Positions 12,536-44,271 of a stretch of DNA of 64,000 bases are shown here, piece after piece. The stretch is from Caecitellus pseudoparvulus (taxonomy: Eukaryota; Protista; Bigyra: Bicosoecida), in the NCBI GenBank assembly GCA_965644315.1, contig CBFFRQ010000077.1, forward strand, positions 62,001 through 126,000, read 5' to 3'. The first letter of the stretch is position 1; each line of letters opens with the position of its first letter. The notes under the pieces were generated by a model. The model made no database searches. It worked only from the letters and a program-made list of their open reading frames with translations, and was not told the DNA's origin. The position numbers and the translations under genes were made by a program.

Positions 12536-15454
12536 ATGCGCCCACTCCTTGCCGCTGCCAGCCTGCTGCTGGCCAGCTGTGCGGCTGCAAAGGCCACGTG
12601 GTATGGTCGCAGCGACACGAAGGCAGCCGCCATTCCACCCCCCGCCACGACTGGGGAGGGGCTGAACCCGAACCTGCACGCCACTGTGCGGACAGGGAGT
12701 CCCTATGCAGGTCGCCTGGCCGCCCAGGCGTGTGGCATTGACTTCCACAATGAGGTGAACTGGTACACGTTCGAGGACGGCGCGTGGGATGCGAGCCAGG
12801 CGCTGCTGCGGGTGGTGCGCCGGTCGGCGTTTGCGACCGAGACGGCGGCCGGCTTGATCGGCTACGAGCAGGAGGGGCTGCCTGCTGATTTGAGGTCAGC
12901 GGAAGACGCCAACGACCGCGTAGTGTTCTCGTTCGACCCTGCCACCGGCGGCATGCTGCCGACCGACCTGCCGCTGCGACCCTGCCTCGCCGCCCTGCTG
13001 CAAGCTGGTGCCGACCTGCAGCACCGCAATCGCCTGGAGGGAGAGTCAGCCCTGGACCTGGCTGTGCGCGCGGATGACGCGTGGATGGTGGGGTGCCTGT
13101 TGAACATGGGGGCTGACCCTCAGAAGCGGGATGCGCGGGGGCTCACGGCACTGCACTACGCAGCGCACGGGAACCACATCCACGCCCTGCAAGCCCTGGT
13201 CCACCACCCCAACACCGCCATTGACGCTGGCATTCGTCCCCAGCGCGTGAACGCCCTCATGATCGCCGCCCAGGCGGGGCATGCCGAGGCGGTGGCGGCG
13301 CTGCTGGTCGCAGGTGCCGACCCCAACGCAGTGGACAAGGGCGGCGTCACGGCCCTTGGCAAGGCGGCTGTGCTGGGCCACGTGGACATCGTGCGCCGCC
13401 TGGCTGAGGCGGGGGCAGACCCCTTTGCCCTGGACAAGAACGGCGCCTCTCCCCTCGTCGCGTGTGTGAAGCAGAACGCGACGGAGGGGATCCGGGTGCT
13501 CCTGGACCTGGGCGCCGATGTCCACGCACCCATCCTGGCCGATGGCGCCACCATCCTCATGTACGCGGTGTCCCTGCCGGCCTCACGACCTGTCATCGCG
13601 ACGCTGCTGGCCGCTGGCGCTGACCCCAACGCCGTCACCCGCAGTGGCGCCACGCCCATGTCCGTCGCAGTGCGGACCTGCAGCAGCAGCATTGTGATGG
13701 ACATTCACAAGGCTGGCGGGAACGTAGAGACCAAGGTGGGTGGCAAGACCCTCCTGGTGCTGGCCTGTGAGAGCGGCCGAGCTGGTGGCGTGGCGTCCCT
13801 CCTGGCCCTGGGCGCCGACCCGAACCAGGTCGCAGACGCCAAGTGGCTCACGCGACCCCTGCACGTGGCGGCCATGGCGGGGCACCTGCCCACTGTGAAG
13901 GTGCTGCTCAAGGCTGGTGCGCGCCTGCACGACGCAGACCACGCCAAGCACACGGCCCTGCACTGGGCGGCGTACTCCGGCCACGCCGACGTTGCGGGGT
14001 ACTTGCTGCGACGTGGGCTGGACGCCAACGCCGTCAACAGCGACCAGCTCACCGCCCTCATGCTGGCCGCCCAGCAAGGCCACGCTGACGTCATCACGGC
14101 CCTGGCAGAGGCTGGCGCTAACTTGGACGTGCGCGAAGCTCGTCGCCAGCGACCACCTCTTCTCATGGCTGCTGGTCGCGGCAAGCTGGATGCCGTGCGA
14201 GCGCTGCTGGATGCTGGCGCCGACATCAACGCCACAGACAGCCGCCTGTGGACGGCGCTGTCACTGGCTGCCGTCAAGAATGACCGCAACATGACCCTGC
14301 TGCTGCTGCAGCGGGGCGCGTCGGTGAAGGCGTATTACCCGCTGGACACCGGCCTGCTGCCTGAGGACATGCAACTGTCAGATGCCGCCGTGCCAGGGCT
14401 GCCGCCGGGGGCGGGGGTGGTGCCTGAGGACGCCGTGGACTCGCACCTGTGTCTGTCCCTCACACTGCGCGCGGCACATTGGGACAAGTCGCCCGAAGGC
14501 CGCGCAGCACACGAGCGTGCCGTGGCTGAGGCGCATGAGCGGCACATGGAGCCTGAAGAGGCAGCTGTCTCTCGCAAGGCACGGGAAGCCAAGGATCGCC
14601 GCCGCTCTGCCAAGCGCAAGAGCAAGAAGGGGAAGAAGGGCAAGAAGGGGAAACGGAGCAAGAAGGGCAAGAAAGAGAGCAAGCGGCGCCTGAAGCACCC
14701 CGGCGAACACTCGCCTGAGCTGGAGTACCCGCCCACGCCCTGGGATGTCGCCGTGCCCGTGTGCCTGGCGGCATTTGGCGCACCCCGGGAAACGCTGCCC
14801 GAGGTGGCTGACACGCTGTGTGGCTTCAAGGGGGACTTGCGCCGCCCTGCGTCACCCAGCTGCGGCGTGAATTCCATTCGCATCCCCGCTGCGAGCGTGC
14901 TGGTGAACCCTGGCGGCGTGTGGCCGAAAGTGGCGGACGAAATCGCCACACAGCTGGTGTTCTTCACACGGCGGTATTTCGCCGACCACCAGCACCACCG
15001 GCCGCCAGTGGTGCAGGGCGTAGAGTCCATCCTGGACACGCAGGAAATCCTCAACGCACGAGGCATCAGCCTGGACCACCTCGTGGACAAGTCCTTGGAA
15101 GAGGTGAACGAGATTCTCAACGGGCCAGCTGCTGCGTCAGTCACTACTGGCTTCCAGGCTGAGGCAGAGACACATGGGGACGACACACGCCATGCCAAGG
15201 CTGACTCTAGTGCAGACTCCGAGCAGCGTACGGGCGTAAAGCACAGCGCTGGAGACCAAGCACAGGCACCTGGCGAGGGCGATGCGTTTGCTGCAGCCGC
15301 TGCGACGCTGGGGTCCTTCACCAGTGCGAGTGAAGATCGCGCGCCTGTCTCCGGCTCCTCCCATCGCGCTGGACACCCCGGTGCTAGGGCTGGCAACACA
15401 GACACCTCCGGTCAGGATGAAATGGAGCAGGAGTTTGAGGAGCTGCTGGGGTAG
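12536..15454 (+). CDS. Ankyrin-repeat protein with predicted signal peptide and Lys-rich tract
   Basis: 972-aa ORF. About 12-13 ankyrin repeats (GLTALHYAA, GVTALGKAA, KHTALHWAA, QLTALMLAA; LLxxGADPN). Hydrophobic N-terminus MRPLLAAASLLLASCAAA; tract KRKSKKGKKGKKGKRSKKGKK. Confidence 0.85.
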   Translation: MRPLLAAASLLLASCAAAKATWYGRSDTKAAAIPPPATTGEGLNPNLHATVRTGSPYAGRLAAQACGIDFHNEVNWYTFEDGAWDASQALLRVVRRSAFATETAAGLIGYEQEGLPADLRSAEDANDRVVFSFDPATGGMLPTDLPLRPCLAALLQAGADLQHRNRLEGESALDLAVRADDAWMVGCLLNMGADPQKRDARGLTALHYAAHGNHIHALQALVHHPNTAIDAGIRPQRVNALMIAAQAGHAEAVAALLVAGADPNAVDKGGVTALGKAAVLGHVDIVRRLAEAGADPFALDKNGASPLVACVKQNATEGIRVLLDLGADVHAPILADGATILMYAVSLPASRPVIATLLAAGADPNAVTRSGATPMSVAVRTCSSSIVMDIHKAGGNVETKVGGKTLLVLACESGRAGGVASLLALGADPNQVADAKWLTRPLHVAAMAGHLPTVKVLLKAGARLHDADHAKHTALHWAAYSGHADVAGYLLRRGLDANAVNSDQLTALMLAAQQGHADVITALAEAGANLDVREARRQRPPLLMAAGRGKLDAVRALLDAGADINATDSRLWTALSLAAVKNDRNMTLLLLQRGASVKAYYPLDTGLLPEDMQLSDAAVPGLPPGAGVVPEDAVDSHLCLSLTLRAAHWDKSPEGRAAHERAVAEAHERHMEPEEAAVSRKAREAKDRRRSAKRKSKKGKKGKKGKRSKKGKKESKRRLKHPGEHSPELEYPPTPWDVAVPVCLAAFGAPRETLPEVADTLCGFKGDLRRPASPSCGVNSIRIPAASVLVNPGGVWPKVADEIATQLVFFTRRYFADHQHHRPPVVQGVESILDTQEILNARGISLDHLVDKSLEEVNEILNGPAAASVTTGFQAEAETHGDDTRHAKADSSADSEQRTGVKHSAGDQAQAPGEGDAFAAAAATLGSFTSASEDRAPVSGSSHRAGHPGARAGNTDTSGQDEMEQEFEELLG

Positions 15455-17153: not shown

Positions 17154-19813
17154 ATGGATGACGACTTTGTGAGGACTGTGGGCAGTGATGACGAGGATGT
17201 CGTGCGTGTGCATGCCAGTGCAAGTTGCCCTGCCCCTGTTCACTTCTCGACTGGCGTGTTCGACTGCAGGAACTGGTGTCCAGCTCGGACTCGGAGGAGA
17301 GCGAGGCGGGCTCAGGGTCCGAGGCAGGCGGCGCACATGAAGGCCCTGCATTTGACGACCTTGGGGATGAAGAGGAGGAGGAGGAGGCTGGTGCCCAGCG
17401 TGCTGCCAGGAGGGCTGAGCGAGCGGCAGCCGCCGCCGCCGCCGCCGCTGCCACTGCCAAGGGCAGTGAGTGGAGCTTCGCAGCGTCAGGCGTGTCGGGT
17501 GTGCGGGCGCCCAGTGCCATGATGACGAGTGTGGCGTCCAAGATCGCCGCGCTGCGGGCGGCGAAACGCAGCGCGGGAGGCGGAGCTGGTGAGGAGTCAG
17601 AGGGGGATGAGGCCGCGGCAGCCCCCCCCGCACCCCCCTCCCGCAAGCGCAGTGGGGACAACATCACCGTCAAGCGCACTGCCGCTGCGGCCAAGGCCGC
17701 TGTGAGCGTGACGTTCCCTGAGCTGCGCCTGTCGCGTCCGCTGCTGAGGGCGGTGGGGGACATGGGGTACACTACCCCCACCCCCATCCAAGCACGCACC
17801 ATTCCGCTGGCACTGGCCGGCAAGGACATCGCAGGCAGCGCCGTGACGGGCTCTGGCAAGACTGCTGCCTTCCTGCTGCCGTCCCTGGAGCGCCTCATGT
17901 TCCGGGACAAGTCGTCTCCTGCGACGCGCGTGCTGGTCATGGCGCCGACCCGCGAGCTGGCGACGCAGTGCCACCAGGTCGCCACGCGACTGTGCAAGCA
18001 CACCGACATCTCCTGCTGCCTGGTGGTGGGCGGGCTCAGCGTCAAGGTGCAGGAGGCGGAGCTGCGCGCGCGACCTGACGTCGTCATCGCGACCCCAGGT
18101 CGCATGTTGGACCACCTCCGCAACTCCCAGTCCGTGCACTTGGAGGCTGTGGACATCGCCGTGCTGGACGAAGCCGACCGGCTGCTGGAGATGGGCTTTG
18201 CTGAAGAGGTGCAGCAGGTGTTGTCCTTCACGCCAGCCTCTCGCCAAACGCTGCTGTTCTCCGCCACCATGACGGAAGCGGTGCTGTCCCTGGCACGGGC
18301 GACACTGAAGAAGCCTGTCGCTGTCAGTGCCGACCCGCTGTTCGACATGGCGCGCAACCTGCGGCAGGAATTCGTCCGCATCCGCCCCTCACGGGAGGGC
18401 GACCGGGAGGCCATCCTGCTGGCGCTCATCAAGCGCAGCTTCCCGCGACGTGTCATCGTGTTCACATCGCGCAAGCGAGAAGCCCACCGCATGCTGCTGC
18501 TGCTGGCACTGGCAGGTGTCAACGCGACAGAGCTGCACGGGAACTTGAGTCAGAAGGCGCGCCTGGACGCGTTGGAGGATTTCCGCACCGGCGCAGCTGA
18601 CGTGCTGGTGGCCACAGACCTGGCGGCTCGAGGGCTGGATGTGCAGGGCACGGACACCGTGATCAATTTTCGCATGCCCAGTCAGCTGACGTCATATGTG
18701 CACCGTGTGGGGCGCACAGCCCGTGCTGGGCGGTCGGGCTGCGCCGTCACGCTGGTGAGCGAAGAGAAACGCACGATGATGAAGGAGATCATGAAACGCG
18801 CGAGCCAGAATGTCATGTCCCGCAGCGTGCCCGCGGAGGTGGTGGAGGCGTACAAGAAGAAGATCCAAGGCATGGAGGGCGACGTGGCGGCCATTCTGGA
18901 GGCAGAGCGTGAAGAGCGGCACATGCGGCTGGCAGAGGTGGAGCTGCAACGGGCCTCCAACCTCGTCACGCACGTGGATGAAATCGCCGCCCGCCCCAAA
19001 CGCACCTGGTGGACAGACGCCAAAGGCAAGGCTGAGTTGAAAGCTGCTGTGGACGCGGCACGCGCCAGCGGCACGCTGCACGGACAGGCGGCGGCGGCAG
19101 CGGGAGAGGGTGACGGCGCCGCTGACGGCGTGACCGTGGCGGACATCAAGCCCGTGTCAGCCAAGGAGCGCAAGCGGCTGCGCAACGAGGAAGTGCGTGC
19201 GGCGCAGAAGGCGGCGAAGGAGGCCGCTGCGAAGAAGACGCACCGGCTGACTCGCAAGAAACGCCGTCGGCAGGAGGCGCGTGAAGAGATCCAGCGCGCC
19301 ACCAAGGTCGCGCGCGGCGGGGGGGACGCCGTCACTGCTGCGTTGACGGGGTCGGATGACGTGGCCAAGGCTGCGAAGCTGGCGCGGTCCGTGGGGCGAG
19401 TGGACGCCAGCGTGCGGGCCGCAAAGCTGGCCAGCCGCAGTCTGTCCGCCAACATGGGCATGAGCGAGGGGCAAGCCAAGCACTTCCTGAAGAACCAGGC
19501 CCGCGCAGAGGCGCAGCGCAACAGGCGCAAGAAGCTGGAAGCTGCACAGGCCGCCACAGCCGAGGCGCAAGCACACGCCGCCATGGCCAGTGTGGAGAAG
19601 GCCCGTGGCAATGTGAAGAGTGCCCCATCTCGCTCAGCCTTGGGCGGCGGCCAGTGGGAGCGCAGGGACAAGCTGGCCACACGCAGGGGTGCAGTTTACC
19701 GTGGCCCCGAGCCAGACGACATCAAGGGCGGGCCGGGCGAGAACATGCTGCGCAAGGGCGGCAAGATCGGCCACTCCAAGTTCAAGAGCAAGGCGCGGTA
19801 CAAACGCAGGTGA
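17154..19813 (+). CDS. DDX27: DEAD-box RNA helicase DDX27/Drs1 (60S biogenesis)
   Basis: Q motif GYTTPTPIQ, AVTGSGKTAAF, PTRELA, DEAD, SAT, YVHRVGRTARAG; DDX27-type RPKRTW and C-terminal FKSKARYKRR. Intron 17202-17269. Confidence 0.93.
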
Positions 19814-21555: not shown

Positions 21556-24500
21556 ATGCAGCAGAGCCTGGGCCCCGCCTTTGTCGCGGGCTTGGCTGTC
21601 CGGGAGCGTGTTGGCGCTGGCAGTAATGGCGCAGTGGTGCGGGTGCAGCCACCGCCCGACCCTGCCGCAGCTGCAGCGGCGAGCGCCAATGCAGCCGGGG
21701 AGGAGGACCGGCGCGAGCAGCGCCTGGCGTCCACCGCCACTCTGTCTACACAGCCCTTTGCACTGAAGGTGGTGTCTCATTTCTGGAGCGAGGAGGCGCT
21801 GCAGAGCCTGGACGTGGAGCGGAAGTCTCTCACAGTCAGTGCCGCGGCGACGAGGGCGCTTCGGGCGGCACCACACGCCGCCGCTGTGCCTGTCACGCAG
21901 AGGTTGCCGCCGCACCCCAACATCATCCGATGCTACGGCGTGGACAAGGTCCTCATCCCGCCCTCCATTGTCGAGGCGCTGCCGGATGACATGGCTTCCG
22001 TGGTGAGTTTGGCGCAGCCAACGGAAGGGTGGCAGGTTGCGCCACTGTGGGCCGGAATGGCGGCCGTGTTTGCCCAAGCCGCTCCAGGCTCCTGTCTGTT
22101 CAGGGGTGGTTAGCTCGTGTGTTGTTCTTATTCGCTGGGCTGGCTGCGGTGGAGGCTGCGCCGGCGCGCCGGCGCTCGAAGTGCAGGCTGCGGAACTTGA
22201 ACCCACGCTGCACCCTTCCCGCGCAGGCACAAAGCGGGACGTACTCCACCCAGTTCTTTGCATTCCAGTACCACCCCACATCGTTAGATCAGTACCGCAA
22301 GTTGTTCCCCTGCCCCATGCCGTACCACATTCTCTTCAGGGCGGCCGTGGACATGCTCCTGGTGCGCAGCGGCAGCACTTGCACGAGCCGGGCGCTGAGA
22401 CGTGCACCCTGCGCCACGCCCCCCGCCCCCGCACAGGCTGCCGAGCACATGGCCCAGCACGGCATCGTGCACGGGGACTTGAAGGAGGACAACATCCTCG
22501 TCTCATTCGACGGCCGCTGTGTCATCGGCGACTTTGGGCTCAGCATGGCAGCGCCCAGCGTGCCAGCACCCCCTCCTGGCCAGTCGCCCCCCCGGCAACC
22601 CCACAGCCTGGCACACACAGGGCCCATGCTCATACCCGCCTTTTCGCCCCCGTCACCGCCCTGGGCGGCGCTGGCTCAGCAGTTGCGGGGCAGCAGGCGC
22701 CCCCCCCCTCCGCCGTCCTCCCGCCCCCCCCCCGCCACACACCCCGCCAAAACAGGCAGCCTGCAGGAGACTGCGCTGCAGGCGTCGTACATAGAGACGT
22801 ACAGCATGTCCCTGCACCGGGCCGTCATGCCGCCAGAGGTGCTTAACGCATACGACTTCGCCGACGGCCTGTTCGTGATGTTCAAAGACCGACCCCCCCC
22901 CTCGGGCCTGCCGGGGGGGGGGTACATCGGCACCGGCGCCCCCACCCCCACCACCTCCCACACGGACGTCGTCCTGGACTTCACACGGCAGGCCTCCTGG
23001 TCCATTGGCATGATGCTGTACGAGCTGGGCGCCGGCCACAGCGCGCTGCCGTCTTACCCCCGCCCAACGTGCCTGGTTCGCCCCTTCACACAGTGCACGC
23101 TGGAGGCGGGGGAGGGGCATGTGGAGGGGGGTGCGGGGGGGGAGGACGCCTCGTCACCCGACCCCCCCTCCACGTACCCCGTCCCCGGCGTCGGCTTCGC
23201 GTGGCACCGCATCCCCCTCCTGGACCGCGCCAGCTACCCCCCCCCCTTCATCGCCCTCCTCCGGCACCTGCTGCACCCAGACCCCAACCAGCGCATGGCG
23301 GTGGGCGAGGCGCTGCAGCACCTGCTCACCAGCCCCGAACTGCACCCCACCCTGCGGCACTTCCCCCTCGCCTTCCACAGCTCCGCCCATCGCGTGGCCA
23401 CGCTGACCAGTGTCTTTGACCGACAGGGGGCCAGCCGCCGTGAGCCCCTGCCGCCCATCAGCACGGTGCCCTGTCCCAGCCTCGTCACGCCGCCTCGCTT
23501 CGTCGTGGTGCGTTTCACGAACTGGCTGGGCCAGGTGCAGTGCGTGACGGGGTCCCTGGAAACCTCCCTGGGCGCCCTGCTGTTCAAACTACACAAGGAC
23601 TTCGTGCTGCCGACAGAGGGGGCCCAGGCTGCCCCTGGTTGCCTGGCCCTGGGGGGGTCCGTGTTGCATGCCGTGTCAGTGCCGTGGAAGGCTGGGCAGC
23701 GTGAGTTCGGTGACACAGAGGAGGCAGGTACGGTGCTGGGTGGCAGTGCGGCGGATGCGGAGGACATGACCCCCGTGCAGGGGGCGGCACCCCCGGGGCA
23801 GAACATCGTGGAGGGCTTCTCGTGGGAGCCGTCGACGTGGAGCACCCTGCGCGACGTGTGGCTGGTCGCAGCTGCCGACGGCGTGCCCAAGGCGGCCACC
23901 AGCACACGTGGCGTGGGGGGACGTGCCAAGGCGAACTTGGAGATGGACTTCGAAGCCACACCTGCCATGACCTACATGCGTGTGCCTGGTGTGACTACGG
24001 CTGTGCCCGTTGTGGACGTGACGGTGTGTCTGGGCGCAGAGGACATAGTGCAGGGCTCCCTCAGCACCCTGCTGCAGCGCCTCGCCGCCGTGGGGGAGGT
24101 GTTGGATGGCGCCGCCACCCTGCGTGAAAAGGCGCTGGTGATCGGCAACCCCTATGACGACAAGGTGGCGGGGCTGCTGCCGCCGACGCCGTGTGACATC
24201 ACGGCGCCGCTGAATCTAGCCTGGGGCCTGGCGTCGGAGGAGGAGGAGGAGGAGGGGTGGGGGCAGGCGGTGCAGGGCATCCAGCCCACGCTGTGCGCGT
24301 TCTTGCTGGAGAGACTGCAGTGGGTGGCGGCCCAGGCGGTTCGCAGCTCAGTGGAGGCACTGCCGTACACGACTGTGTGCGGCGCCGCCACCACCATCGC
24401 CCACACCTTCTCCCACCACGCAGACATCCTCACCAGCACCATGGGCGTCATCCGCTGCGTCTCCTGCACTCGCAGCCTGGACACGGCCGTGGAGCTGGTT

Positions 24501-25856
24501 CGGGATTACTCCTGCCTGGACTGGGCCATGCACGGGCTGCGGGAAGAGTCACTGCACTCTCGCCCCTCAGCAGTGGAAGACGCCCTCATGGCCATCGCCA
24601 ACCTGCTGCGTTTCCCCGAGATCCAGCAGGGGCACTTCGACCTGTCCATCGCCCCTGCCGACATCGCAGAGGTGGCGGTGTTTGCGCTGTACGCGTTCGA
24701 CTTCGAGGAGGCGGAGACGGAAGCTGTGCTCATCGCCGCCTGCTCAGCCTTCAAGCACCTGTCCCACTCTGTGTTTGACGAGGAGACGGCCAGCGCAGTG
24801 GCGGCCCACGGCACGGTCAGCATGCTCGTCGCCATGCTGCACCCCATGCGCCGGCGGCAGGATGAAATTGAGGAGTTGCTGACCGCCCTCAGCAACCTGC
24901 TGGTGTTCGAGGGGGTGCGGGACAACCACACAGAGTACAAAGTCGCTGCCAGTGCCGTGCTGCAGATCATGAACCGGCCGCAGTACGCGAGCGACGCGGG
25001 CGTGCAGACGCTCTGCATCAACGTCATGCGGAATTTGGCGTGTGTCGCGTCAGGCGAAGGCACCTCCTCCCTCACCGATGCCTCTGGCATGGTGACCTCC
25101 CCAGCCTACTACATCACGCAACTGGGCGCGGCAGTGGCCGTGGAAGGCGCCATGGAGCGCCTGCCCCAAGCTGAGCATGTGCAGGAAAACGGCCGGTGCT
25201 GCCTGTACAACCTCCTGCTCATCGCCACAAACGACATGGGCTTGCTCAAGTCCCAGGCACGCGAGGTACTGTCCCGGGCCACAGCTGCAGAAGCCAGGGC
25301 AGAGGCAGCTGAGGCAGAGCTAGCCCAGCTCAAGGCGGCGATGGAGGCTGAGCGCAGCGCTTCGGCCGTTTCTCATGGAAACGCAGCAGGCACCACACCC
25401 CGGCGCACCAGCCGCCGCTGGTCAGGCGCCTCAGCGGGCACGGGTGGCTCCGAGGGCCACCGCATTGGGCGCCTGCCGCCAGTGTCTGCCCGCATTGCCA
25501 AGTACCAAGCCGCCGCCAAGGCCCGGCAAGCTGCTGCGGCGGCAGGCGAGGGCGAGTGTGGTGACTCGGTGGCGGCGGCATCAGAAGGCGGCGAGTGGCG
25601 GCCGCCCTCCCCCCGTGGCTCAGAGGTGTTCGTGACTCCTGACTCGCTGGGCTCTGACTCAGAGGCCTCCGTGGGCCAGTCCACCAACCAGCCGTTGCCA
25701 GTGGCCTCCCCCCCACGCTCGCCGATGTCCACGACGCCCAGCCTCGCACCCGGCAGGGTGGTGGGGGGCACGCCGGGGGGCGGCTCAGGCACGCCCAAGG
25801 CGGCACGCCATAGCCGAGTCCTGCTGGCGGTGGGCAGCTCCCCCGTGCCGGGCTGA
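21556..25856 (+). CDS. Ser/Thr protein kinase (PINK1/NKF-like) with C-terminal ARM repeats and coiled coil
   Basis: VGAGSNGAV, FALKV, LPPHPNII, HGDLKEDNIL, IGDFG, MPPEV, LDFTRQASWSIGMMLYEL, HPDPNQR. ARM-like repeats about 24300-25230. Introns from 22003 (acceptor uncertain) and 22362-22436. Confidence 0.8.
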
Positions 25857-26146
25857 CACGACACGTGGCGTGTCCTGGCGCCAATGCACTGCACTCACAT
25901 TGCGTTACTCCTTCTGAATGGAGGTTTACGGCGAGAATCCATTGAGTGTTTGTGGTGGCAAGCTTTAGGCTGCGGGGAAGTTTGCGGAGTCTGCTCTGGG
26001 TGCGGAGAGTGCACTGCTGTGTGCCGTTGACGCAGACTGCGCCGCAGAACAATACCCGACCATGACGAGGCGAGAAGTGACAAGTGTGACAGTCTGCCAC
26101 GTCGCTACCGTCGCGGCATGCCGGAGGAAGTCCTTGCTCTGGCGCC

Positions 26147-29100
26147 ATGGCTGTCGACAAAGCGCCGCCACTCATCAGTGTCGCTGCTGTGCTCAGCGTG
26201 CCAGCCACCGGCGAACCGCGCGTGGTGTGGCAGCTGGTGTCCCCGGGCGTGAACCCTGCACCTGCAGTGGAGCCATGGGGATTGTTCCTCGTTGGACAGC
26301 AGGAGTCCCTCCTGCAATTCAGCACGACGAGCGAGAACCGGGAGGTCACGAACGTTACCGCAGCTTCGCTGAAACGCCAGCCTAACGCAAGTGTCACAAG
26401 TGGCCCTGCAAACGAAGCCCTCTGGTTCCTCGTCGCCCATGAACAGTGCGTTTGTACCTTCTTGAACTAAATCCCCTGCCCCCTTCGTTTCACACTCACT
26501 GCACTCATGATTGGTTCGCTTTCCCGCCCCGACACAGGCCCCTCTTGCTGTCGTGGAGGCGGTGGGTGTGTGGCGCACTCACCGGTGCACACCGGGCCGC
26601 AGCGGGCGCAGCCCCCGGCGAGTCCCCTGCTCTGTTCATGCGACAGCTGCAAGGCACGGTGTTGAACATGCTGCACGACGTGCCAGCGCCAGTGCGGGGC
26701 CTGGCGCAGGTTCGGGCGTGTGTTGGGGACGAAATGGTGCCCTTCGAGTTGCCACCCGCCAACGGCAACCCGAGCCCAGTGGACACGACATCCCTGCGCC
26801 TGCTCTTCACCTGCCTGCCCATTGACGACATCCTGGCCCTGTGGGGGGCGGTACTGGGCGAGAGCAAGGTGGTGCTGCACAGCGCCCATGGTGCCTTGTT
26901 GACTCCCGTCGCTGCTGCGTTGAACGCACTCCTGGCGCCGCTGACGTGGCAGCACACCTGCATTCCCCTGCTTCCACCTGCCATGGATCTGGCCACGCTG
27001 CTGGAGGCGCCCTGTCCCTTCGTCGTGGGCGTGAACAGCCACCAGCTGGCCAGCGCTGGCGTGGGCGTCACTGCCAAGGCACGGCCGGCCTGGCGCCCAG
27101 GAGGGGAGGGTAAGGGGGGGGCATCCACCCCTGGCAGGCGCCGGGCGGGGACACCCGCCGCCCCGGCCACCGTGCCCAGTCTCAGCGCAACAGGCTTGCC
27201 CCCTGACGTGTGGCTTGTGGACCTGACGCTGGGGGGGGTAGTACCCCCCCTCGAGCCAGACGCACCCCCCCTCCCACCCGCCCTCGCCGACCAAATGCTG
27301 TGCCGCCTGCACGACCTCGCGGCACACCTGTTCGCGCCACCTGCTGCGTTGCAACTCATGCACGACGTGGACGGCGCAGTGACTCAGGCAGTGGGCCCAC
27401 TGGGCCCCCACCTGGCGCAACTGCTCATGTCTCCCCAAGGGCAAGCTGATGTTGAGGGCAGTGAAGCGGGGACGCCCCCCCCTGCACCCCCCTCGACTGT
27501 GCAGCCCCCCTCCACTCCGCACCACAGCCAGCCGGGCAGCTTGGGCAGCACCTTCAACAGCACTGGCAAATTCCGCCGTGGCAAGACGTTGCAAGTGTTC
27601 TTGGAGGCCATGGTGACTCTCGTCGGCGACTACGACGACCACCTGGTGCCAGTTGGCGGGGAGGATGACATGGACATGCAGTTTGACTTCGAGGCGGCGG
27701 TGGAGGCGCGGGGAGACGTCGCGCCGTATTACGGACACCTGGTGGGCACCCAGGCCTTCCTGCAGTTTCTGGAACCCCGCATCACGCCCTGCCCTCACGT
27801 GTGCGCCGAGGTGCTGTGGTTTGACGCGGCAGTGGATGCGGCGGATGGGGCAGCGGACGAGGGGGGCCCCCTTTCCCCCCTGGACCCCCCTCACGTCGCA
27901 GCCGCCAAGGCCTTCCTCTCTGACGCCGCCTTCGCAGTGTCCCGCACTGTCGTGGCGCCTGCCCCACGTGGCCCCACAAGACACGTCTGGCGCGACCCTG
28001 ACGCAGCACGGGCCTCGTCGGCGGCATACCCCCGCCAACCAGTGGCCGACCTGCCGCCCCCCTCAGCCGTTCAGCGCCTGTTGCGCACAGCCCAGGACCG
28101 CCTCCTCGCAGGCGACCGCCGCGCCAGTGCCGTACACCGCCGGACATCGGGGCGTGTGCCAGCCGATGGCGGCGGCGGTGTACGGGAGGCAGCGGAGGAG
28201 GTGGCGACGCGTGCCGCCCACCAACGCAAGGCGGTCGAGCAGGGGGGGGGCGGCTCCTTCATCACACGCATGTGGGCTGCGGTGCGGGGCCGGGGGGGTG
28301 CCGCTGCACAGCACCCCCCCTCCGCCTTTGGCTCCCCTCTGGGCCACCGTGCCGTGAGTGCCGCGACGCCAGCCAGTGCACGGGAGCGGCTGCGGCGCCG
28401 GAACACGCTGAGAACACGGACGCCCGCACGAGGCGCCTCCCCTGCACTTGGCGCTCCGCCGGCAGTGACGCCCAGTGGGTTGAGTGTGGGGGGGGAAGAG
28501 GGGGTGGCGACCCCCCCCTGCACACCCCTCCCACCCCCCCCTGGATTGGACGTCCCTGGCGTGGTGCTGCTGGGGGCAGGGGGTGGCCAAGGCTCCGCCG
28601 CTCTGCCCCTGCCCACGGCCGCCCTGTGTGACAGCATGCTGTGCGCATGCCCCCTCCCACATGCGGACGAGGGGGGGTCCGAGGGGGGGGACACCTCCTT
28701 CGCAGGGGCCCAGGCAGACATCGCCTCCCCCACAGTGGGCGTGGCCCGCAGCCGCCCCGCCAAACACCCCACCTGGCCCCTGCCGCCCCGCAAAGCCCCT
28801 CAGCTAGGCAGCGCAGCGGCCGCCACTGCCCAGCTGTGCGGTCTGTGTGGGGGGTTGCAGGTGCTGTGGGGGGGGGTGGCGCGCCTGCCCAATCTGCGGG
28901 GCGCGGCAGGGGGGGGTGCGCTGCCCCCCCACATCCCCCTCAACGCAGCAGGCGGCGCCCCCCTGGCCCTGGTGCAGTCCGTCGCACTGCACCACACATC
29001 TGCCCTGGGGGAGTTGCTGCACGAGGGGGCGGTGTTCGCACCCCCCCCTCACACCCCTGCCGCCCTCGCCCTGCGCACTGAGCCATGTGGGCCCCCCCCT

Positions 29101-32100
29101 GGTTTCCGGGTGTTGCCCCCCTCCCACTTGCAGGCGTACTTGGAGCAGGCTGCCGGTGCACCCCCCCCAGCAAAAGCCCCTCGTCGAAGCGAGGGGGGGG
29201 GCAGCAGTCGGTCTGAGGGGGGGTCAGAGGGGGCGCAGAGCCCCCCCTCGGCATGCACCGCCCACTCCCAAATCCTGCAGGCAGCTGACCGGCTGTACGG
29301 CGCGTGGAGCGGCGTGGAAGTGGAAGGGGCCATCGGCGGGGTAGGGGGTCTGCGGAGCTACACCCCCCCTTCACCCCCCTCCGCCCTCGCCGCGTACTGC
29401 CGCCTGGTGGCGGGGTATGGGAGGGCGGGAGTGGGGGATGCTGTGGAGGGTGCTTGGGCTGAGTGGACGCAGTGGGTGGAAGTGAACGGGGAGGGCTTGG
29501 GGGGGGTCAGCAGTGGACCCGCCCCCCCCCGTGGACACCCCCGCATGTCTGGCGGGAGCTTGGACTTCGACTGGCTGGGGCGAGGGGTGGCGGAGGGGGG
29601 GGGACACGGCCGCGCGCGGGGGGGGTCCAGCGCCACCCTCTCCTCCCTCGTCGCAGCCACGGCAGTGCAAGGCGGGGCTCTGGCCGGAACAGCGCGCGTG
29701 TTCTCACACGTCATCCCCGCCCTGCTCGCGTGTGGTCGCAGCGATGTGGCAGTGCGCATGCTGTGGCATGGGCTGGGCATGGCTGGGGCCGAGGGGGGGG
29801 ACAGGGCACCCCTCCCTCCCACGCCCCTGCGGTCGCCACCCCCCCTGCTGAAGGTCGGAGGGGGGGGCTGCAAGACTGCCCGGCAGGGCCTCTCCGCACT
29901 GCAGCGTGCAGCAGCCACCTGGGCGCCACTCACCCTCACCGTGCCTGCAGGGTGTTTGGGTCTGACGCTGGAGGAGCTGGGGCCCAAGGCGGAACACATC
30001 ACGCGGGGTGTTCTGACTTGGGCGAGAGCACGGGAGGGCGTCAAGGCCGCGAAAGCCTGTGGCGGGCAAGACCCTGCTGAGGCGTTGGCGGCGGCAGAGG
30101 CGGTCACTGCTGCGTTGCAGGAAAGGGATGGGCCCATGGCGGGCGCAGGGGGGTGTGGGGCGTGGGTGGCTGGGCTGAACACGGGGCACGCCCCCTCCGC
30201 TGCCGCGCAGGCGGGCGTTCGGGTGGGAGACGTGCTGGTGAGCGTGGATGGGGTGGAGGTGCTGCGCTGGCGCCACGGCCAGCTGCTGGAGACCCTTGCA
30301 AAACGCAGCACATCAGGCATGCGCCTGGTCGTGGCGCGGCGGGTGTCGCTGCATCGACGCGGAGGGCGGAGGGGGGAGGGGTGTGACACCCCCCCCCTCA
30401 CACCCCTCACAGGCTCCTCCTCCTCCCTGGGCGGCTCCAAGCGCAGTCGCTGCGGGGGTAGCCAGGAGGCAAGGGTGCAGCAAGTGCCTGGCGAGGAGGA
30501 GCGCATCGTGCTTGCCTCTGAAGCGCCAAGTGCCTCACACCGCCCGCCTCCACTGGATCCGTTCGCTCAGGCAGCTGGTGTGATGGAGGGTGGCGGGGAC
30601 AGTGGGGCGGTGCTGTGCTCGCCTGAGGGGTGTGCAGGGGGGGGTCAGCCCCGTCCTCCGCCGGCAAAAGCCCCCCCTGGCCCCTCCACCTCCCCCACCA
30701 ACATTCGAGCAGCCACCTTTGGAGTGAGCCTGGTGACGGGGGCAGGTGGCGCGTGTCCTTCGTGCGGAACCCCGCACTCCGTATTACGCTTGCTGGCCGC
30801 AGCTGCCAAGGGGGGCAAGGGGGAGTACACTCTGCCCTGCCCCGTATGCGGCAAGGCCTTCGCCGCACGCGTGCAGGTCACCCTGCCGGGGGGAGAGCCG
30901 GCCTGGCGCCTCATCCTGCCGCGTCACACGCTGCTGGCAGCGCTATCCAAGATCGGACCTGTGGCTGACCCTGCGTCGATGGCACAGACGGCGCCTGACG
31001 CACACGCCAACGTGCTGCTGCTGGTGCTAGCGGCTGACTTGCCGCGCAGCCCAGCACAGATGGGTCTGTTGCCCCCCCTCGACACCCCTGCCTCCCCCCT
31101 CGCCTCCCCAGGCGGTGGCAGCACAATTGGAAGCTTCACGTACCAAGGCTTGGGCACAGGTCGGGCCAGCAGTTTTGGCAGTGTGCTGAAACGCATCAGC
31201 ATGGGCGTGCCGGATGGCGCAAAAGGGCCAGGGAGTGACAGTGACGACACCAGCTTGGTCAGGGCTGACCTTGATGCGTTGCGGAGTCACTCCGCACAGC
31301 TGGCGAGTGAAGTGGACGCGCTTGGCACGGCAGTGCTGAAGCCAACCTTGGCGGGGCTGGCACGGCTGACCCAAGCTTACAAACACCAAACGCAGCAGGT
31401 GCGGGTCACCGAATGGCGCCGCCTGACAGCTCTGAAGCGCTTCGGGGACAGCGCGCCGCCTGTGTTTGTCGCAGTGCGCCTGCGCCCCCCGCGGTCAGCT
31501 GAAACGCACCATGGCGAAGCTGAAACCGGGGAGTCCCCTGTGCGTGTCCTGGACTCTCGCCGCCTGGCCGTCGTGACTCCGGGAGCTGACAAGGCTGCTG
31601 GGTACCGTTTCGACGCCGTGCTGCCCAGCGACAGCTCACAGGAGGATGTGTTCCGCACTGTGGAACACTTGGCGGTGTCAGCCCTGCACGGCGTCAACGG
31701 GTGCATGCTGGCCTATGGGCAGACAGGGAGTGGCAAGACACACACCATGTTGGGGGGTGACGGGAGGCATGGGATGCCCCTCCCCCCCTGCACACCCCTC
31801 ACCCAGGACCCCGCGCTGCCCAGCCCTCCCCCCCACCACGGCATGCTGCAGCGCCTGCTGTGTGCTCTCTTTTCCGCGCCCCGTGCAGAGGCAGCCGCCA
31901 CTGGCGTCCCCATCCACTTCACCCTTACAGTGGGTGCTGTGGAGATATACAATGACAAGCTGCGTGACCTGCTTGGGCAGGGAGGTGCGGCAGCCGCACC
32001 CCCCACCCTGCAGCGCCGCAAGACCCCCTCCGGTGCAGTCATCGTGGACGTCAAGGGTGTAGCGCTGCTCCCCGCATCCAGTCCGTCTGATGCGTTACGC

Positions 32101-33006
32101 CTGCTCGCCAACGCACAAGCGGCTCGCTCCGTCGCGGACAACGGCGTGCATGCCGGCTCCAGCCGGAGTCATCTGTGCCTGCTGCTGCACTGCACTTGCA
32201 GTCGGGGCGGTGGGGCGCCTGTCCAGTCCAAGGTCGTCGTGTGCGACCTGGCAGGATCTGAGCGCCTGTCAGCCACCAAGCTCCACGAGCGGGCACCAGG
32301 CACGGCGGCCCTGGGCGGCATGGGATCCCCCAGCGCAGCGGACACGGCCGCCAGCGCGCGCCTGCGAGAGGCGCAGAGCATCAACTCCTCCCTCACCGCC
32401 CTGGGCAACGTCATCTCAGCGCTGGGCAAGGCCAGCGGCAAGGGCGGCCACATCCCCTACCGTGACTCCATGCTCACCCAGCTGCTGCAGGACTGTCTGG
32501 GCGGTGCAGCCCGCTGTGCTCTGCTGGCCACCCTGTCTCCCGATGCGCGTGACGTGCCTGAGAGCATCTGCACCCTCAACTTCGCCCTGCGCGCCAAGAA
32601 CATCAAGGTCGCATCACTGCGGCCTGAGGCGGCCGTGGGCGCAGAAGCCAAGGCCAAGGCTGCCACCGCTGCGGCTGCCGAGGCGGCGGCTGCGGCAGAT
32701 GTGCTGGCAGAGCAGTTGGTGGAGTGCCAGCAGCAGTTGGAGCAGCTGCAAGGCGAGCATGCTGCGTTGCAGGCCGAGCATGCTGCGTTGCAGGCCCGGC
32801 GCCGGGACAGCGGCGGGTCAACCTCCTCCCGCGGCACCAAACGCAGCCGAGGCGACACAGCCGACACGCTTGGCAGTGACCTACCCGTTCAAGATGGTGG
32901 CACATTAGCGGCAGCTGCGGGCTCTGGCGCCCACCGCCCGAAGACGCCCCGCAAAACGCCGCGTTTCAAGTACGACATGAACGGGCGCCGGGTTGCGTTG
33001 CGGTGA
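26147..33006 (+). CDS. DENN-domain (DENND4-like) Rab GEF fused to PPR-like motifs, PDZ, Zn-ribbon and a C-terminal kinesin-14-type motor
   Basis: Exon 1 from 26147, intron 26446-26537, then a single long ORF. cDENN (LWGAVLGESKVVLHS...LLAPLTWQHTCIPLLP...LEAPCPFVVGV); dDENN (TQAFLQFLE); PDZ (AAAQAGVRVGDVLVSVDG); kinesin motifs AYGQTGSGKTHTM, EIYND, SSRSH, DLAGSE, HIPYRDSMLTQLLQDCLGG. Confidence 0.88.
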
Positions 33007-33211
33007 CTGTGCAACGCCAAAGGCAACATCCTAGCAAATACCACTCCCACAAACTCACACTGGTCCCTTGCCGCGAACGCACCTTGCTGCCTTGCGTGCT
33101 GCACCCGCAACCACCTGCACCCCTGCCACGTGTTGACCAGCGTGGTCACGCCTGCGCTTGGACACTGTACTGGCCTTCACGCCCACCCAACACACCTCCC
33201 CGAAGCTCACC

Positions 33212-33971
33212 ATGCGCGTCACGACCATGTTGCTCGCGGGTTTGGCCCTGGTGGCCCTGACCGCCACGACTGTGGAGGCACGGAAGAGCAAGGACCCCAA
33301 GGCGTGCGAAGGTGCGTGGTGCAAATTCCGCTCCTGCGCCAGAAGCACCGCAGGTTTTGGGCCACTGCCTGATCTCTGCATTGCGAAGTGGCTGCACATG
33401 GAAATGATGTCACATTTCTGTTTCCTGCGTGCACTGCCCGAGCTGCACGTGGCCACCTTGTAGCGCTACCAGACACGCCGCCCACCACGTGTGCGCAGTG
33501 TGCAAGAAGGTCGTGAATACAGTCCTTGACCGGGCAGGGAAGGACAACGTGAAGAACCAGGAGGTTGTGGAGGATGCCCTCACCTCCTACTGCAAGGGCA
33601 CTCGCATGGACAGCAAGGAGAACAAGCTGGTGCGTTGACGAGTGGGGGGCCCTGTGTCGCACCAAGTCACCCTTCACCCGCTTTCCCCCCTGCAGTGCTA
33701 CTACGTCACGCCCGTCAAGCGAACCTTCAGCAACGCAGTGAAGCTGGGCGCCCCTGTGGACCGCATCTGCAAGAAGCTGGCCCGCGACACGCCCGAGGTG
33801 TGCCAGCTGCGTTTCCCCGAGAAGCTGGACTTGAGCAAGACCGACCTGAGCAAGCTGCGTGTGCGGCAGCTGAAGGCCATTCTGAACGAGCGGGGAGTCA
33901 CGTGCGATGGCTGCCTGGAGAAGCGGGACTACGTCCGCCGTGTGGAGGAGACCATGCACATGGACCTGTGA
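33212..33971 (+). CDS. MANF: MANF/CDNF (ARMET)-like ER protein
   Basis: Signal peptide; introns 33312-33498 and 33630-33695 give CEVC...YC...KENKLCYY...ICKKLARDTPEVCQLRFPEKLDL (saposin-like), then SAP-like KLRVRQLKAILNERGVTCDGCLEKRDYV; ends HMDL. Confidence 0.88.
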
Positions 33972-34115
33972 GGGTCGTTTCAGTTGAAACGCCGAGAGAT
34001 GCAGCTGCCATGTTCCTGAGGTGCATTGCACAAGGGGCAAGGCTAGGTCGCAGCACGCAAATGCACTGACAACCCACCCAAGCCCAGAGGGGCGGACGAG
34101 CCCGGGCGCGGAGGC

Positions 34116-35306
34116 TTACTTGCTGCCCAGCGTGGGGAAGTCAGCAGCCTTGGGCGCAGCGGCACGGCGGGGCTTGCGGTCGCCACCCTCACGACGAGGC
34201 TTGCGGTCGCCATCGCGACGAGGCTTGCGGTCGCCACCATCGCGGCGGGGCTTGCGGTCGCCGCCCTCGCGGGGCTTGCGGTCGCCACCCTCACGGCGGG
34301 GGGGGCGGTAGTCGTCGCCGCCAGACTTGAAACGCAGCAGCTTGGGGTCCACCTGGGCGGGGGCGCGGGTCTTCTTCTTGCCGGCCTTGGCGGCGATGCC
34401 CGAGCCCTTCATCTGGGCCAGGTAGTCGTCGCCAGACGCCTCGGCCTTCTTGTGGGCCTTGCCGTCCACGGCCTCCGCCTCGGCCTTGGCAGCCTCCAGC
34501 TCGCCAGCCAGGGCAGACGCCTCCTTCTCCTGGGCGGTCTGCTTCAGGAAGGCGTCCAGAGAGACGTAGGAGTCCTCGGGCTCGGGCTCGTAGGGGGTGG
34601 CGGCGCCCTCGGCCTCCAGGTCCTTGGCCACATCAGCGCCCTCGGCAGCCTCGGCGACGGCCAGGGCGTCCTCAGCCTTGCCGGCCTTGGAGGCGGCGGC
34701 GGCGTCGGCGGCGGAGTTGCCCCAGCCACCAGCGCCAGAGCCACCACGGCGCACCTCGTGCCCACGGCCAGTGCCGGAGCGGCGGTCGTACTCACGGCCA
34801 CGGCCGCCACCGTTGCGGGGTCCACGGCCACCTCGGCGGCTGCGAAGGGGGGTGAGGCGTGGGGAGTGCGTTCCTGCCGTGTGGGAAGTGGCAGCTGATG
34901 TCGGTGCAGTGCAGTTCGTTCCGACACCACGCCAAGTGCACGCTGCGCCGCTGCCCGCCGCGCAGACGGGCAGAAACGCAGCCACAAGATTAGCATGCAT
35001 GCACCCTGCACTCACTCCTCACGGGTGCGCTCAGAGCGGCGGGGGCGGGCGGCGGCACCCTCATTCTGGGTTGCCATGGCAGTGCTGCCACCGCGGGGCT
35101 TGCGGGCTGGGAAACGCGGGGAGGCGGGGCGTGAGCGGGGACTGCAGGGCAGCATCACAGAACGTGGGCATTCACGCACAGCCAGCGGGCTTGGAGGAGC
35201 CCACGGGGCCTCGGGAAGAGGAGGCCTTGGCGGTGGACTTGGTCACCTGCGGCTGGCGGGGCACCTCATCGTCCGAGTCGTCCAGGGCGGCGAAGTAGTT
35301 GGCCAT
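34116..35306 (-). CDS. SERBP1: SERBP1/HABP4/Stm1-family RNA/ribosome-binding protein
   Basis: MANYFAALDDSDDE; REYDRRSGTGRGHEVRRGGSGAGGWG; YVSLDAF; C-terminal DFPTLG. Predicted introns 35107-35179 and 34840-35015. Confidence 0.85.
34171..34300. repeat. Coding tandem repeat, 5 copies with core GGCTTGCGGTCGCC, periods 27/24/27/24 nt
   Basis: Units start at 34171, 34198, 34222, 34249 and 34273. They encode RREGGDRKP-like units in the SERBP1-like gene. Confidence 0.9.
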
Positions 35307-42206: not shown

Positions 42207-44271
42207 ATGTTCGATCAGTACCTATGGGTGGTGGTGCTGGGCGCCATTCTGTCTTTCTTCGCCGCCTTTGGCATCGGCGCCAATGATGTCGGTACGTCAT
42301 CAGCCCCGGCTCAACACGTGCATGCTCGGGCGCTTGCGACGTGAGAAGGAACTGATGGCGGCACCACATGTCTGCATTGTGCTGCTCATCGCTTACATCG
42401 CAGCCAACGCTTTCGCGACGTCTGTGGGCGCCCGCTCGTGCGTGCTTCGCTCCGCCCGGCACCAGGGATAATGGCCCGCACCCAACACCCGCCGCACAAC
42501 GCACCAGGTTGACCCTGCGCCAAGCGGTCCTGGTTGCAGCTGTTTGCGAGTTCGCAGGGGCCTTCGCCCTCGGCAGCCACGTCACGCAGACCATTCGGTG
42601 AGCCCCCCCTTGGCTGCACGCGATGGGGGTACACAGCCTCAACCTCACTGCCCACCCTCCACACTCACCGCCCCCTGCAGAGGCGGCATCACACAGGCAG
42701 ACGCCTTTGAAGACTTCCCCGAGCTGCTCATGGTGGGCATGCTGTGCGTCATTGTTGCGACGGGCGTGTGGCTGGTGGTGGCGACGCTGCTGCACATGCC
42801 CGTGTCGACAACGCAAGCCACAGTCGGCGGCATCATTGGCGTGGCCCTCGTGGCCAAAGGCACCGCAGCGGTGCAGTGGGAAGGCGTCGGACTCATTGTT
42901 GCATCATGGTTCCTGTCACCCGTGCTGTCTGCTGCGCTGTCGGGGGGGCTGTACGCCTTGGTGCGGCATGTTGTGTTGCGAAGCGACGACAGCTACCAAC
43001 GTGCCTTTGCTGCGTTGCCGATCCTAGTCGGAGTGACTCTGGCCATCAACGCCTTCTTCATCGTATATGAAGGGCCTCAGGCGCTCGCTGGCACGCCGCT
43101 GTGGCTGGCCATCGTCATTGCGCTGGGCGTGGGGGTCGTCAGCGGGCTGGTAACTGCCTTTGGCATTGTGCCCTGGGTGCGCCGCCACGTGCAGGCAGAC
43201 CTGAAAGATGCCGCTGGTGATACCTTGCTGAGCCAGCCATCTTCAGCCACTGATACGGCCAGCACGACAGGGGCGGAGGCCCCCCATGTGGAAATTGAAA
43301 TGCCCAGGCAGGAAGGCGACGTGGATGCAGTCGAGGGCGAGTCAACCGGCAGTGCAGCGTCGGACTCCCACCATGAACAGGGCACGTCGGGTGTATCTGA
43401 ACCCCAGGAAGACAGGGAAGGTGTACTCGTTGACGATGGGAACTCAGATTCAGGCGGTGGAGATGCGGCGGAGGCAGGGCAGGGGCCCGTGCATGCCGAG
43501 GCGCCGGTGGCTGAGCCCAGCGAGATCAAAGGTGGTGTCGCGGCCGAAGATGCAAAGGATGCGCCAGGGCCATCTTCACAAGCAACACCTTGGTGGAGTG
43601 TGCTGACTGCGGGCATGGATGTGGATGTGCATCGTGACGGCGAGGAGGGCGGGCGGGATGCCGCTGTCGCGGGCATGCACGCCGCAGCTGAGGCGTTTGA
43701 ACCACGCACCGAGCGTGTCTTCAGCTACTTGCAAGTGGTCACCGCCATGTTCGACTCCTTCGGGCACGGCGCCAATGATGTCGCAAACTCCGTCGGCCCC
43801 CTCGCCGCCATCGTGTCCATTTACGAGACGTCGCGAGTGGGCGGGCAGGCGGAAGTGCCACTGTGGATTCTCGCCTTGGGCGGCGTCGGCCTCGTGGTGG
43901 GGCTGGCCACTCTGGGCCACCACATCATCCGCGCCATCGGCGTCCGCTTGACCAAGGTGACGCCCTCCAGGGGCTTCACCATCGAGCTGGGGGCCGCCTT
44001 TGTCATCGTGGTGGGCTCGCGCCTCGGCTTGCCCCTCTCCACAACGCAAGCGCAAGTCGGCTCCACGGCGGGGGTGGGGCTCTGTGAGGGCCGCCGTGAT
44101 GCCGTCAACTGGTCCGAGATCGGCCGTGTGTTCCTGGGCTGGTGCCTGACGCTGCTTGTGACTGGCTCTCTCTCAGCTGCTCTCTTCGCATTTGCCGTGT
44201 TCTCACCCAACCTCGAAGCTGGAACAGCGGCTGAAGGGCTGAGTGTGCCTGGAAACTCCACCATGGTGTGA
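42207..44271 (+). CDS. PiT/PHO4 (SLC20) sodium-phosphate symporter
   Basis: Two GANDV signatures (FGIGANDV|ANAFATSVG; GHGANDVANSVGP), MPVSTT, TPSRGFTIE, LPLSTT. Introns 42292-42403, 42438-42507 and 42598-42680. Confidence 0.93.

Follow-up and report, generated by a model that had tools for sequence, protein, structure and literature searches.

A stretch of 64,000 nucleotides (nt) from the marine bicosoecid protist Caecitellus pseudoparvulus (NCBI GenBank assembly GCA_965644315.1, contig CBFFRQ010000077.1, positions 62,001 to 126,000 of the forward strand), here called the window, carries at its positions 26,147 to 33,006 a predicted gene in which a DENN module and a kinesin motor are joined. 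According to our computational analysis, this is probably one real gene, encoding a DENND4/Crag-type scaffold with a PDZ domain and a C-terminal motor extension, the product of which would act as a dimer and activate a Rab protein at a site given by microtubules. Lineages with more than 50% sequence divergence have kept the arrangement of a DENN scaffold with a motor. Built from known parts, the architecture is new and appears to be undescribed so far.

Gene structure and conservation of the fusion

The window is eukaryotic DNA with a G+C (GC) content of 59–74%, and the source assembly comprises 30.6 Mb in 215 contigs with 67% GC and few introns. The locus is dominated by an open reading frame (ORF) on the forward strand (26446..33006) with 2186 codons and no internal stop. 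The next-longest ORF overlapping the interval 24000–35000 is the adjoining kinase gene with 1275 amino acids (aa), and the longest antisense or off-frame ORF overlapping this interval has 523 codons. A stop-free run of 2186 codons is far beyond chance. GC at third codon positions (GC3) equalled or exceeded GC at second positions (GC2) in all 300-nt blocks of the frame and was clearly higher except in the blocks at 28339 and 30439. The GC content of the frame is 66–84%, compared with 53–61% in the intron and flanks (53% in the intron itself). As the GC3 pattern is sustained and the GC content drops in the intron and the flanks, the whole frame reads as coding, including the stretch of approximately 1200 codons that separates the motor from the DENN domain.

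Upstream of this frame, an ORF at 26147–26470 lies in a different frame, and removal of the predicted intron joins ..VAHEQ to PLLLSW.. in frame. The gene is thus predicted to consist of two exons separated by a 92-nt intron and to encode a protein of about 2255 aa. All domain and homology searches were run per exon and not on the spliced protein. The peptide encoded by exon 1 is kept in a small ORF that immediately precedes the closest homologue, P0001 (31% over 77 aa, E = 8e-8), which argues for a real coding exon; no BLAST alignment was obtained between exon 1 and the N-terminus of P0094. A preliminary description of this DNA, prepared from its sequence alone, had proposed a short first exon and a single long frame of about 2150 codons. 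This gene model was confirmed by the length of the ORF, the in-frame GT..AG intron and the conservation of exon 1; moreover, all coordinates of that description proved accurate and every motif quoted there was found at its position.

The combination of DENN and kinesin in one ORF was found in five further database proteins with 27–48% identity, namely P0001 (2408 aa; 43% identity in the DENN region and 48% in the motor), P0002 (2439 aa), P0003 (2169 aa, on a 73-kb contig), P0094 (2013 aa) and P0294 (1454 aa). Each of them is a single gene call; their contigs of 7.7–73 kb derive from four metagenomes and one Logan-assembled sequencing run. An exhaustive search with HMMER, in which the DENN profile of the family was run against 1.84 billion representative proteins, returned P0001, P0094 and P0003 at 783–465 bits before the scores dropped to 211, and P0294 was the sole further kinesin-bearing match among the best 150. 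As kinesin-bearing matches were few and the scores fell sharply, the predicted DENN-kinesin family is rare but real, and it occurs in at least five other uncultured protists. The preliminary description had named two findings that would speak against its reading, a widespread occurrence of the architecture in databases and a misassembly at the junction. The former does not apply to the best 150 matches of the representative search, and an assembly misjoin between 27800 and 31400 is unlikely because the join recurs, within the same single ORF, in homologues from five other sources.

Near-identical contigs of 151–230 nt from the marine metatranscriptome X1 map to several parts of the gene, namely exon 1, the regions of the DENN domain, zinc ribbon and coil, and the motor. 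Positions 26100–32099 are also represented, with small breaks, among the contigs of run X4 (organism A), which show about 2% differences, mostly transitions at third codon positions, and seem to come from another strain or haplotype of this species. Apparent joints in run X4 were discarded, since their sides of only 20–21 nt look like repeat artefacts.

Domain organisation of the predicted protein

The core DENN domain was recognised by Pfam (Table 1), and its columns are invariant across the alignments of the family. The window DENN scored 94 bits compared with 144–158 bits for P0003 and P0094. The dDENN match, weak in the window, reaches significance at the corresponding site of P0003, P0094 and P0294, and the columns of the segment following it are conserved in the family alignments. 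A FastTree analysis of 152 DENN regions, which contained no named DENND4 reference, placed the family in its own group of ten with a support of 90. The sequence clusters carry no DENN subfamily name, being unnamed or labelled 'hypothetical protein', and the ESM Atlas returned generic DENN clusters at 0.80, which is below the trust level. The only DENN structures found in the PDB were those of DENND1A/B. Chytrid relatives were considered as DENND4-like candidates and ruled out as DENN+C1 proteins.

The published layout of Crag/DENND4 proteins comprises MABP, uDENN, core DENN and dDENN, PPR, a novel zinc ribbon and an uncharacterised alpha-helical domain (PMC2881412). When the profile of the family's zinc-ribbon/helical module was run against 146 motor-less DENN relatives, 56 were matched (E = 5e-18 to 3e-6); a separate profile detected a PPR module in 45 of these 56 as well. 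The module is C-terminal in the motor-less relatives, with a median of 31 aa left to the end of the protein, and the four cysteines of the ribbon are invariant in 46 sequences. The CPSC...CPVC ribbon noted beforehand is thereby established as part of a module with homologues in motor-less DENN proteins. As this module is homologous to the C-terminal module of these 56 proteins, in agreement with the published layout, the assignment to a putative DENND4/Crag-type scaffold is largely supported; the likeness runs via motor-less DENN relatives and the published layout, not via named animal DENND4 sequences. A C-terminal mixed alpha/beta domain was reported to be unique to DENND4, which is also characterised by a 'long extended unstructured linker' (PMC12311110) comparable to the low-complexity linker of the window protein.

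An AlphaFold model of residues 1140–1540 comprised the PDZ domain, a disordered stretch and the zinc ribbon with the helical domain, the last of these three regions with a predicted local distance difference test (pLDDT) score of 76–92. For a second model of the zinc-ribbon module (pLDDT 74), the best shape matches were a cluster of DENN proteins (template modelling (TM) score 0.58) and an unnamed cluster of mainly diatom fragments (TM 0.59); a comparison of the zinc-ribbon/helical model with the PDB gave no match. The PDZ part of the first model (residues 1–165) showed pLDDT values of 58–89 per 10-residue block, and all 50 best Foldseek matches in the PDB were PDZ-domain entries, with Scribble PDZ1 (7qs9_B) at E = 1.8e-4 and a TM score by target of 0.77. 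Pfam PDZ_6 also matched P0001 (E = 9.4e-7) and P0002 (E = 4.9e-4, below the Pfam cut-off). Hence the PDZ domain with an insertion proposed earlier holds by sequence profile as well as by predicted fold. It contains a CLGL sequence as carboxylate-binding loop and a histidine at the start of helix B, both conserved in P0001 and P0002, and this histidine suggests that the domain may bind class-I C-terminal ligands.

The motor matched the kinesin profile over its full length, and the P-loop GQTGSGKT (31717), switch I SSRSH (32158), switch II DLAGSE (32245) and the HIPYRDS motif are intact; ATPase and microtubule-binding motifs are conserved in all six members of the family. The claim of a complete motor with intact P-loop and switches behind a coiled coil was therefore correct. 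Two insertions, which the window motor shares with P0001 and P0002, follow the P-loop helix (proline-rich, about 30 aa, 31741–31850) and switch II (about 25 aa, 32263–32370), and probably correspond to loops L5 and L11.

The relationship to kinesin-14 is most visible in P0003 and P0094, the slowest-evolving homologues. KIFC3 is the best PDB match for both, and all kinesin family names among the top 120 matches of P0003 are kinesin-14. The neck of P0003 (RERRRLANEVQSLTGAVRVLCRVRP) is close to the kinesin-14 consensus ..RKKLxNxxQELKGNIRVxCRVRP, that of P0094 partly so, and profile scores of the two proteins lean by +21 to +48 bits to kinesin-14. The window neck (TEWRRLTALKRFGDSAPPVFVAVRLRP) is degenerate, with neither the N nor the GN junction. 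As in kinesin-14 proteins (KIFC3/KIFC2, plant KIN-14, KCBP, Ncd), a coiled coil leads directly into the motor via an ExRR-type neck; unlike them, the family stands outside the sampled clade, lacks the GN neck-motor junction and carries RAKNIKV and a coiled coil after the motor, as N-kinesins do. A simple N-kinesin, for which this post-motor segment would speak, is contradicted by the neck and the best matches of P0003 and P0094. IQ-TREE analysis under LG+C20, with a sampling that left out kinesin families 3, 6–11 and 13 and true kinesin-14A, placed the DENN-kinesins (ultrafast bootstrap (UFBoot)/SH-like approximate likelihood ratio test (SH-aLRT) 95/95), kinesin-14 (95/81) and N-kinesins (98/99) on the three sides of a central node. 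Since the six motors form one clade and the DENN domains one group, the data fit a presumed single fusion event.

Table 1. Predicted features of the DENN-kinesin gene and its product (positions refer to the window)
Feature	Position	Strand	Basis and remarks
Exon 1	26147..26445	+	ATG ORF; 99 codons and 2 bases; encodes the N-terminus (presumed uDENN region)
Predicted 92-nt intron (GTGCGT...CACAG)	26446..26537	+	GT at 26446, AG at 26536–26537; after the second base of a codon
Exon 2	26538..33006	+	Uninterrupted coding frame; TGA stop at 33004–33006
Core DENN domain	26644..27048	+	Pfam PF02141, ORF aa 67–201, E = 1.6e-26
dDENN and conserved segment after it (AFLSDAAFAVSRTVVAPAP)	27721..27966	+	Pfam dDENN, aa 426–448, weak, E = 0.094
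Long low-complexity linker	27970..29390	+	Family alignment; poorly conserved
Two PPR-like helical hairpins	29395–29430 (YCRLVAGYGRAG at 29395), 29698–29739 (VFSHVIPALLACGR at 29698)	+	Motif positions
PDZ domain with two-helix insertion (~50–60 aa) between strands 2 and 3	29929..30342	+	Pfam PDZ_6, aa 1251–1275, E = 5e-7
Four-cysteine zinc ribbon (CPSC 30754, CPVC 30838) and alpha-helical domain	30706..31050	+	Family profile, AlphaFold model
Coiled coil and neck (TEWRRL at 31408), straight into the motor	31255..31461	+	Alignment, neck comparison
Kinesin motor domain	31477..32604	+	Pfam PF00225, aa 1678–2053, profile 1–327/327, E = 5.5e-72
Neck-linker-like segment (RAKNIKV) and second coiled coil	32587..32805	+	Compared with N-kinesin RAxNIKN and kinesin-14 RVRxVELG endings
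Basic C-terminal tail, SRGTKRxRG and terminal YDMNGRR	32827..33003	+	Conserved with P0001 and P0002

Proposed mechanism and competing explanations

Based on this domain organisation, we propose that the protein would retain a full scaffold, consisting of the DENN triad, PPR-like hairpins within a long linker, and the zinc ribbon with the helical domain in which motor-less relatives end. Two lineage-specific additions would have been made to this scaffold: the PDZ domain within the linker, and a C-terminal extension composed of a kinesin motor with intact catalytic motifs, which is preceded by a coiled coil and followed by a neck-linker-like segment, another coiled coil and a basic tail. The coiled coils would dimerise the protein, the motor would bind and probably walk on microtubules, and the DENN module, as a guanine nucleotide exchange factor (GEF), would activate an exocytic Rab. 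In this way, Rab activation could follow the microtubule array, which would place or move it without the need for a separate motor-GEF complex. The gene structure, the domains, their conservation within one ORF and the homology of the individual parts are shown by our data; the GEF activity, the Rab target, the motility with its direction and the ligands of the PDZ domain are inferred. DENND4 proteins act on Rab10. The self-transporting GEF of the preliminary description, which would have Rab10-family specificity, bind receptor tails through the PDZ and move vesicles to microtubule minus ends, is likewise conjectural. More tentatively, and as a possibility to which we give less than even weight, a dimeric motor might carry its own DENND4-type GEF and a PDZ cargo hook along microtubules, which would be the first case of a Rab GEF and a microtubule motor fused in nature; an exocytic, Rab8/10-like Rab might thereby be turned on wherever the motor gathers, for example at the minus-end-rich basal-body/flagellar base of a flagellate.

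A number of results weigh against parts of this interpretation, and they concern the scaffold, the transcript and the motor. Of the u/c/dDENN module proposed in the preliminary description, the core domain stands and dDENN is retained with the help of the homologues, whereas uDENN gave no Pfam match in exon 1 or the long ORF and a weak one (E = 0.0018) in P0094. With respect to MABP, Pfam gave no match of any kind on the 99-codon exon 1 and none of MABP type on the long ORF, the existence of a Pfam MABP model being unconfirmed. As MABP was reported in animal and ciliate Crag/DENND4 members (PMC2881412), its absence may be typical of the present lineage. The two PPR-like helices lie where they had been described, but Pfam found no PPR in the window even at E values up to 10. 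In P0003 (E = 0.016) and P0094 (E = 0.0039), the corresponding sites gave sub-threshold PPR matches; hhalign against the PPR module of DENN+PPR relatives aligned the second motif non-significantly (E = 0.043, probability 1.2%), and a custom PPR-module profile was non-significant on the DENN-kinesin family as well. In the DENN tree, the family group stands beside, not inside, the PPR-bearing, DENND4-like clade. The DENND4/Crag layout claimed earlier holds for the most part, with the reservations that PPR stays sub-threshold, MABP was not found and the DENN domain is not nested among PPR-bearing proteins. Furthermore, not all DENN-fold proteins are GEFs; Avl9 is reported as an Arf1 GTPase-activating protein in a 2026 preprint. 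Among the X1 RNA contigs, which may include DNA carry-over, none crosses the intron and none links any two domains.

As to the motor, the best PDB matches of the window domain are mixed (KIF3C, KIF7, KIFC3, KIF15). The window, P0001, P0002 and P0294 lean by 14–37 bits to N-kinesin profiles (the window by 14), which leaves the class ambiguous as true kinesin-14 or N-kinesin members differ by 45–200 bits in leave-one-out comparisons. By path length the DENN-kinesin motors are nearest to kinesin-14, and they are not nested within it; a second tree gave the same topology. The assignment to kinesin-14 made beforehand is thus only partly supported: it stood with regard to the best matches of P0003 and P0094 and the neck of P0003, and failed with regard to the grouping of the motor, which falls outside the sampled kinesin-14 clade into a clade of its own, to the 14 bits of the window towards N-kinesins and to RAKNIKV with its coil. 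Since the tree separates the family, the profile scores split and a degenerate neck is combined with RAKNIKV and a coil after the motor, we treat the motors as a putative small orphan kinesin clade with kinesin-14 affinities, branching beside kinesin-14. As a neck-linker-like segment and a second coiled coil follow a motor of ambiguous class, the direction of movement is not readable from the sequence, and this ambiguity together with the unusual insertions after the P-loop and switch II means that processive transport is not assured.

The same divergence of the motor, with its long insertions after the P-loop and switch II, its ambiguous class and coiled coils on both sides, would also suit a microtubule anchor or organiser, in which the GEF is held statically, e.g. 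at flagellar roots or in the basal-body region, or a non-processive, kinesin-14-like cross-linker with a membrane-recruiting DENN module. Many kinesin-14s are indeed non-processive. A pure anchor, however, would be expected to lose the ATPase and microtubule-binding motifs, which are intact in six of six members, and we consider this explanation unlikely, if still worth serious attention. The lower DENN score of the window, the undetected uDENN and the other activities of DENN folds indicated by the Avl9 preprint would agree with a DENN part that is not an active GEF but a Rab- or membrane-binding cargo-adaptor tail, making the protein a kinesin with an unusual tail; yet the core DENN columns are invariant in the family and the whole DENND4-type scaffold including its C-terminal domain is retained, so that we judge this reading quite improbable. 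Finally, a chance read-through of adjacent DENN and kinesin genes or a misassembly, for which the rarity of stops in DNA with 67–74% GC and the lack of a spanning transcript in the RNA contigs examined might be quoted, has next to no probability in view of some 1200 stop-free codons with a coding GC pattern, a conserved PDZ domain and zinc ribbon in the interval, five homologues from other sources with the same single ORF, and the X4 strain contigs along the stretch with small breaks.

Relation to known systems and neighbouring genes

Literature searches revealed no published description of a DENN-kinesin fusion, nor more generally of a Rab GEF fused to a microtubule motor. Kinesin is never mentioned in a survey of DENN proteins (PMC3521125), and a kinesin survey covering 105 architectures from 45 eukaryotes (PMC2867816) contains neither DENN nor PDZ in its text or 13 supplements. 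Among the matches and clusters examined, no descriptive name for the fusion was found; within the family of six, a source name exists only for P0094 and P0294, and it is 'hypothetical protein'. Within the range of these surveys and database names, the earlier statement that no protein with this architecture had been described is upheld.

Compared with the Rab10-family GEFs DENND4A/B/C, Drosophila Crag and C. elegans DENN-4, the window protein shares the DENN triad, the long disordered linker, the PPR-like hairpins and the zinc ribbon with the helical domain, and differs by a MABP domain that was not detected, PPR signals below threshold, a PDZ domain inserted in the linker and a DENN domain in its own clade. 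Beyond the point at which DENND4/Crag-type relatives stop, it has about 650 further residues, which include a coiled coil and a kinesin motor. The kinesins KIF1A and KIF1Bbeta bind DENN/MADD in trans, which likewise couples a kinesin to a DENN-type Rab GEF, and there the GEF and the Rab vesicle travel on microtubules. In that case, however, a kinesin-3 and a member of another DENN subfamily, encoded by two genes, are coupled non-covalently, whereas the window gene encodes one polypeptide. Fusions of a cytoskeletal motor with a regulator of small GTPases in one chain are found in myosin IX, which carries a RhoGAP, and in Dictyostelium MyoM, which carries a RhoGEF; these are actin motors acting on Rho-family GTPases, in contrast to the microtubule motor with DENN described here.

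The site of Rab activation is thought to be set by the position of the GEF, and motors usually meet GEFs via adaptor complexes; in animals, equivalent GEF-motor coupling needs separate proteins. A conserved single-chain GEF-motor would be a natural experiment on whether GEF position sets the site of Rab activation. Being compact and testable, it would allow one to ask whether the movement of a GEF along microtubules suffices to position a Rab domain. The combination of a kinesin-14-like neck before the motor and a neck-linker-like element after it is of interest for the encoding of direction. In addition, our results extend the C-terminal zinc-ribbon/helical domain of DENND4 type, for which no occurrence outside the DENND4 family had been reported, to many protist DENN proteins.

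On another contig of the genome (L007:1719-5621, G000 contig C31), a single ORF encodes a paralogue of 1301 aa that has DENN, dDENN and the C-terminal zinc-ribbon module but no motor; it shares only 33% identity with the window gene over the DENN core. As this paralogue is kept, the fused gene would be an extra, specialised copy and not a replacement. A hidden kinesin was looked for beside the motor-less relatives P0241 and P0362 (Pythium oligandrum), and none was found. P0241 (L002:8001-11678; 1225 aa) has DENN and dDENN without the zinc-ribbon module or a kinesin and groups with P0294 in the DENN tree; the next gene begins 59 nt downstream on the opposite strand. Its lineage either lost the tail or never had it. 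The nearest DENN relatives further include P0242 and P0244, in which ArfGap and uDENN/DENN/dDENN are combined with DUF3490, and in P0242 also with an IQ motif. DUF3490 is otherwise a C-terminal domain of some plant kinesins, and these proteins would be a second, different link between DENN and parts of kinesins. Another kinesin, a 1016-aa protein with SAM domains, is encoded at L001:1497-4547, two genes upstream of P0003 with a 196-aa ORF between them.

The genes of P0001 and P0002 (loci L004 and L006) are flanked by a MANF-like gene on one side and a large kinase gene on the other. The window gene has the same neighbours, which also speaks for a real fusion: a kinase ORF at 22029–25856 (+), with 54–55% identity over 22443–25469, and a MANF/ARMET-like gene at 33672–33968 (+) with 71–75% identity, and it is inverted relative to both of them in comparison with L004 and L006. 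Other genes of the window recognised by Pfam, all on the plus strand, encode a large ankyrin-repeat protein (12536–15451), a DEAD-box helicase (17225–19810), a PHO4 phosphate transporter (42544–44268) and a Spo11/topoisomerase VI subunit A (55771–57393).

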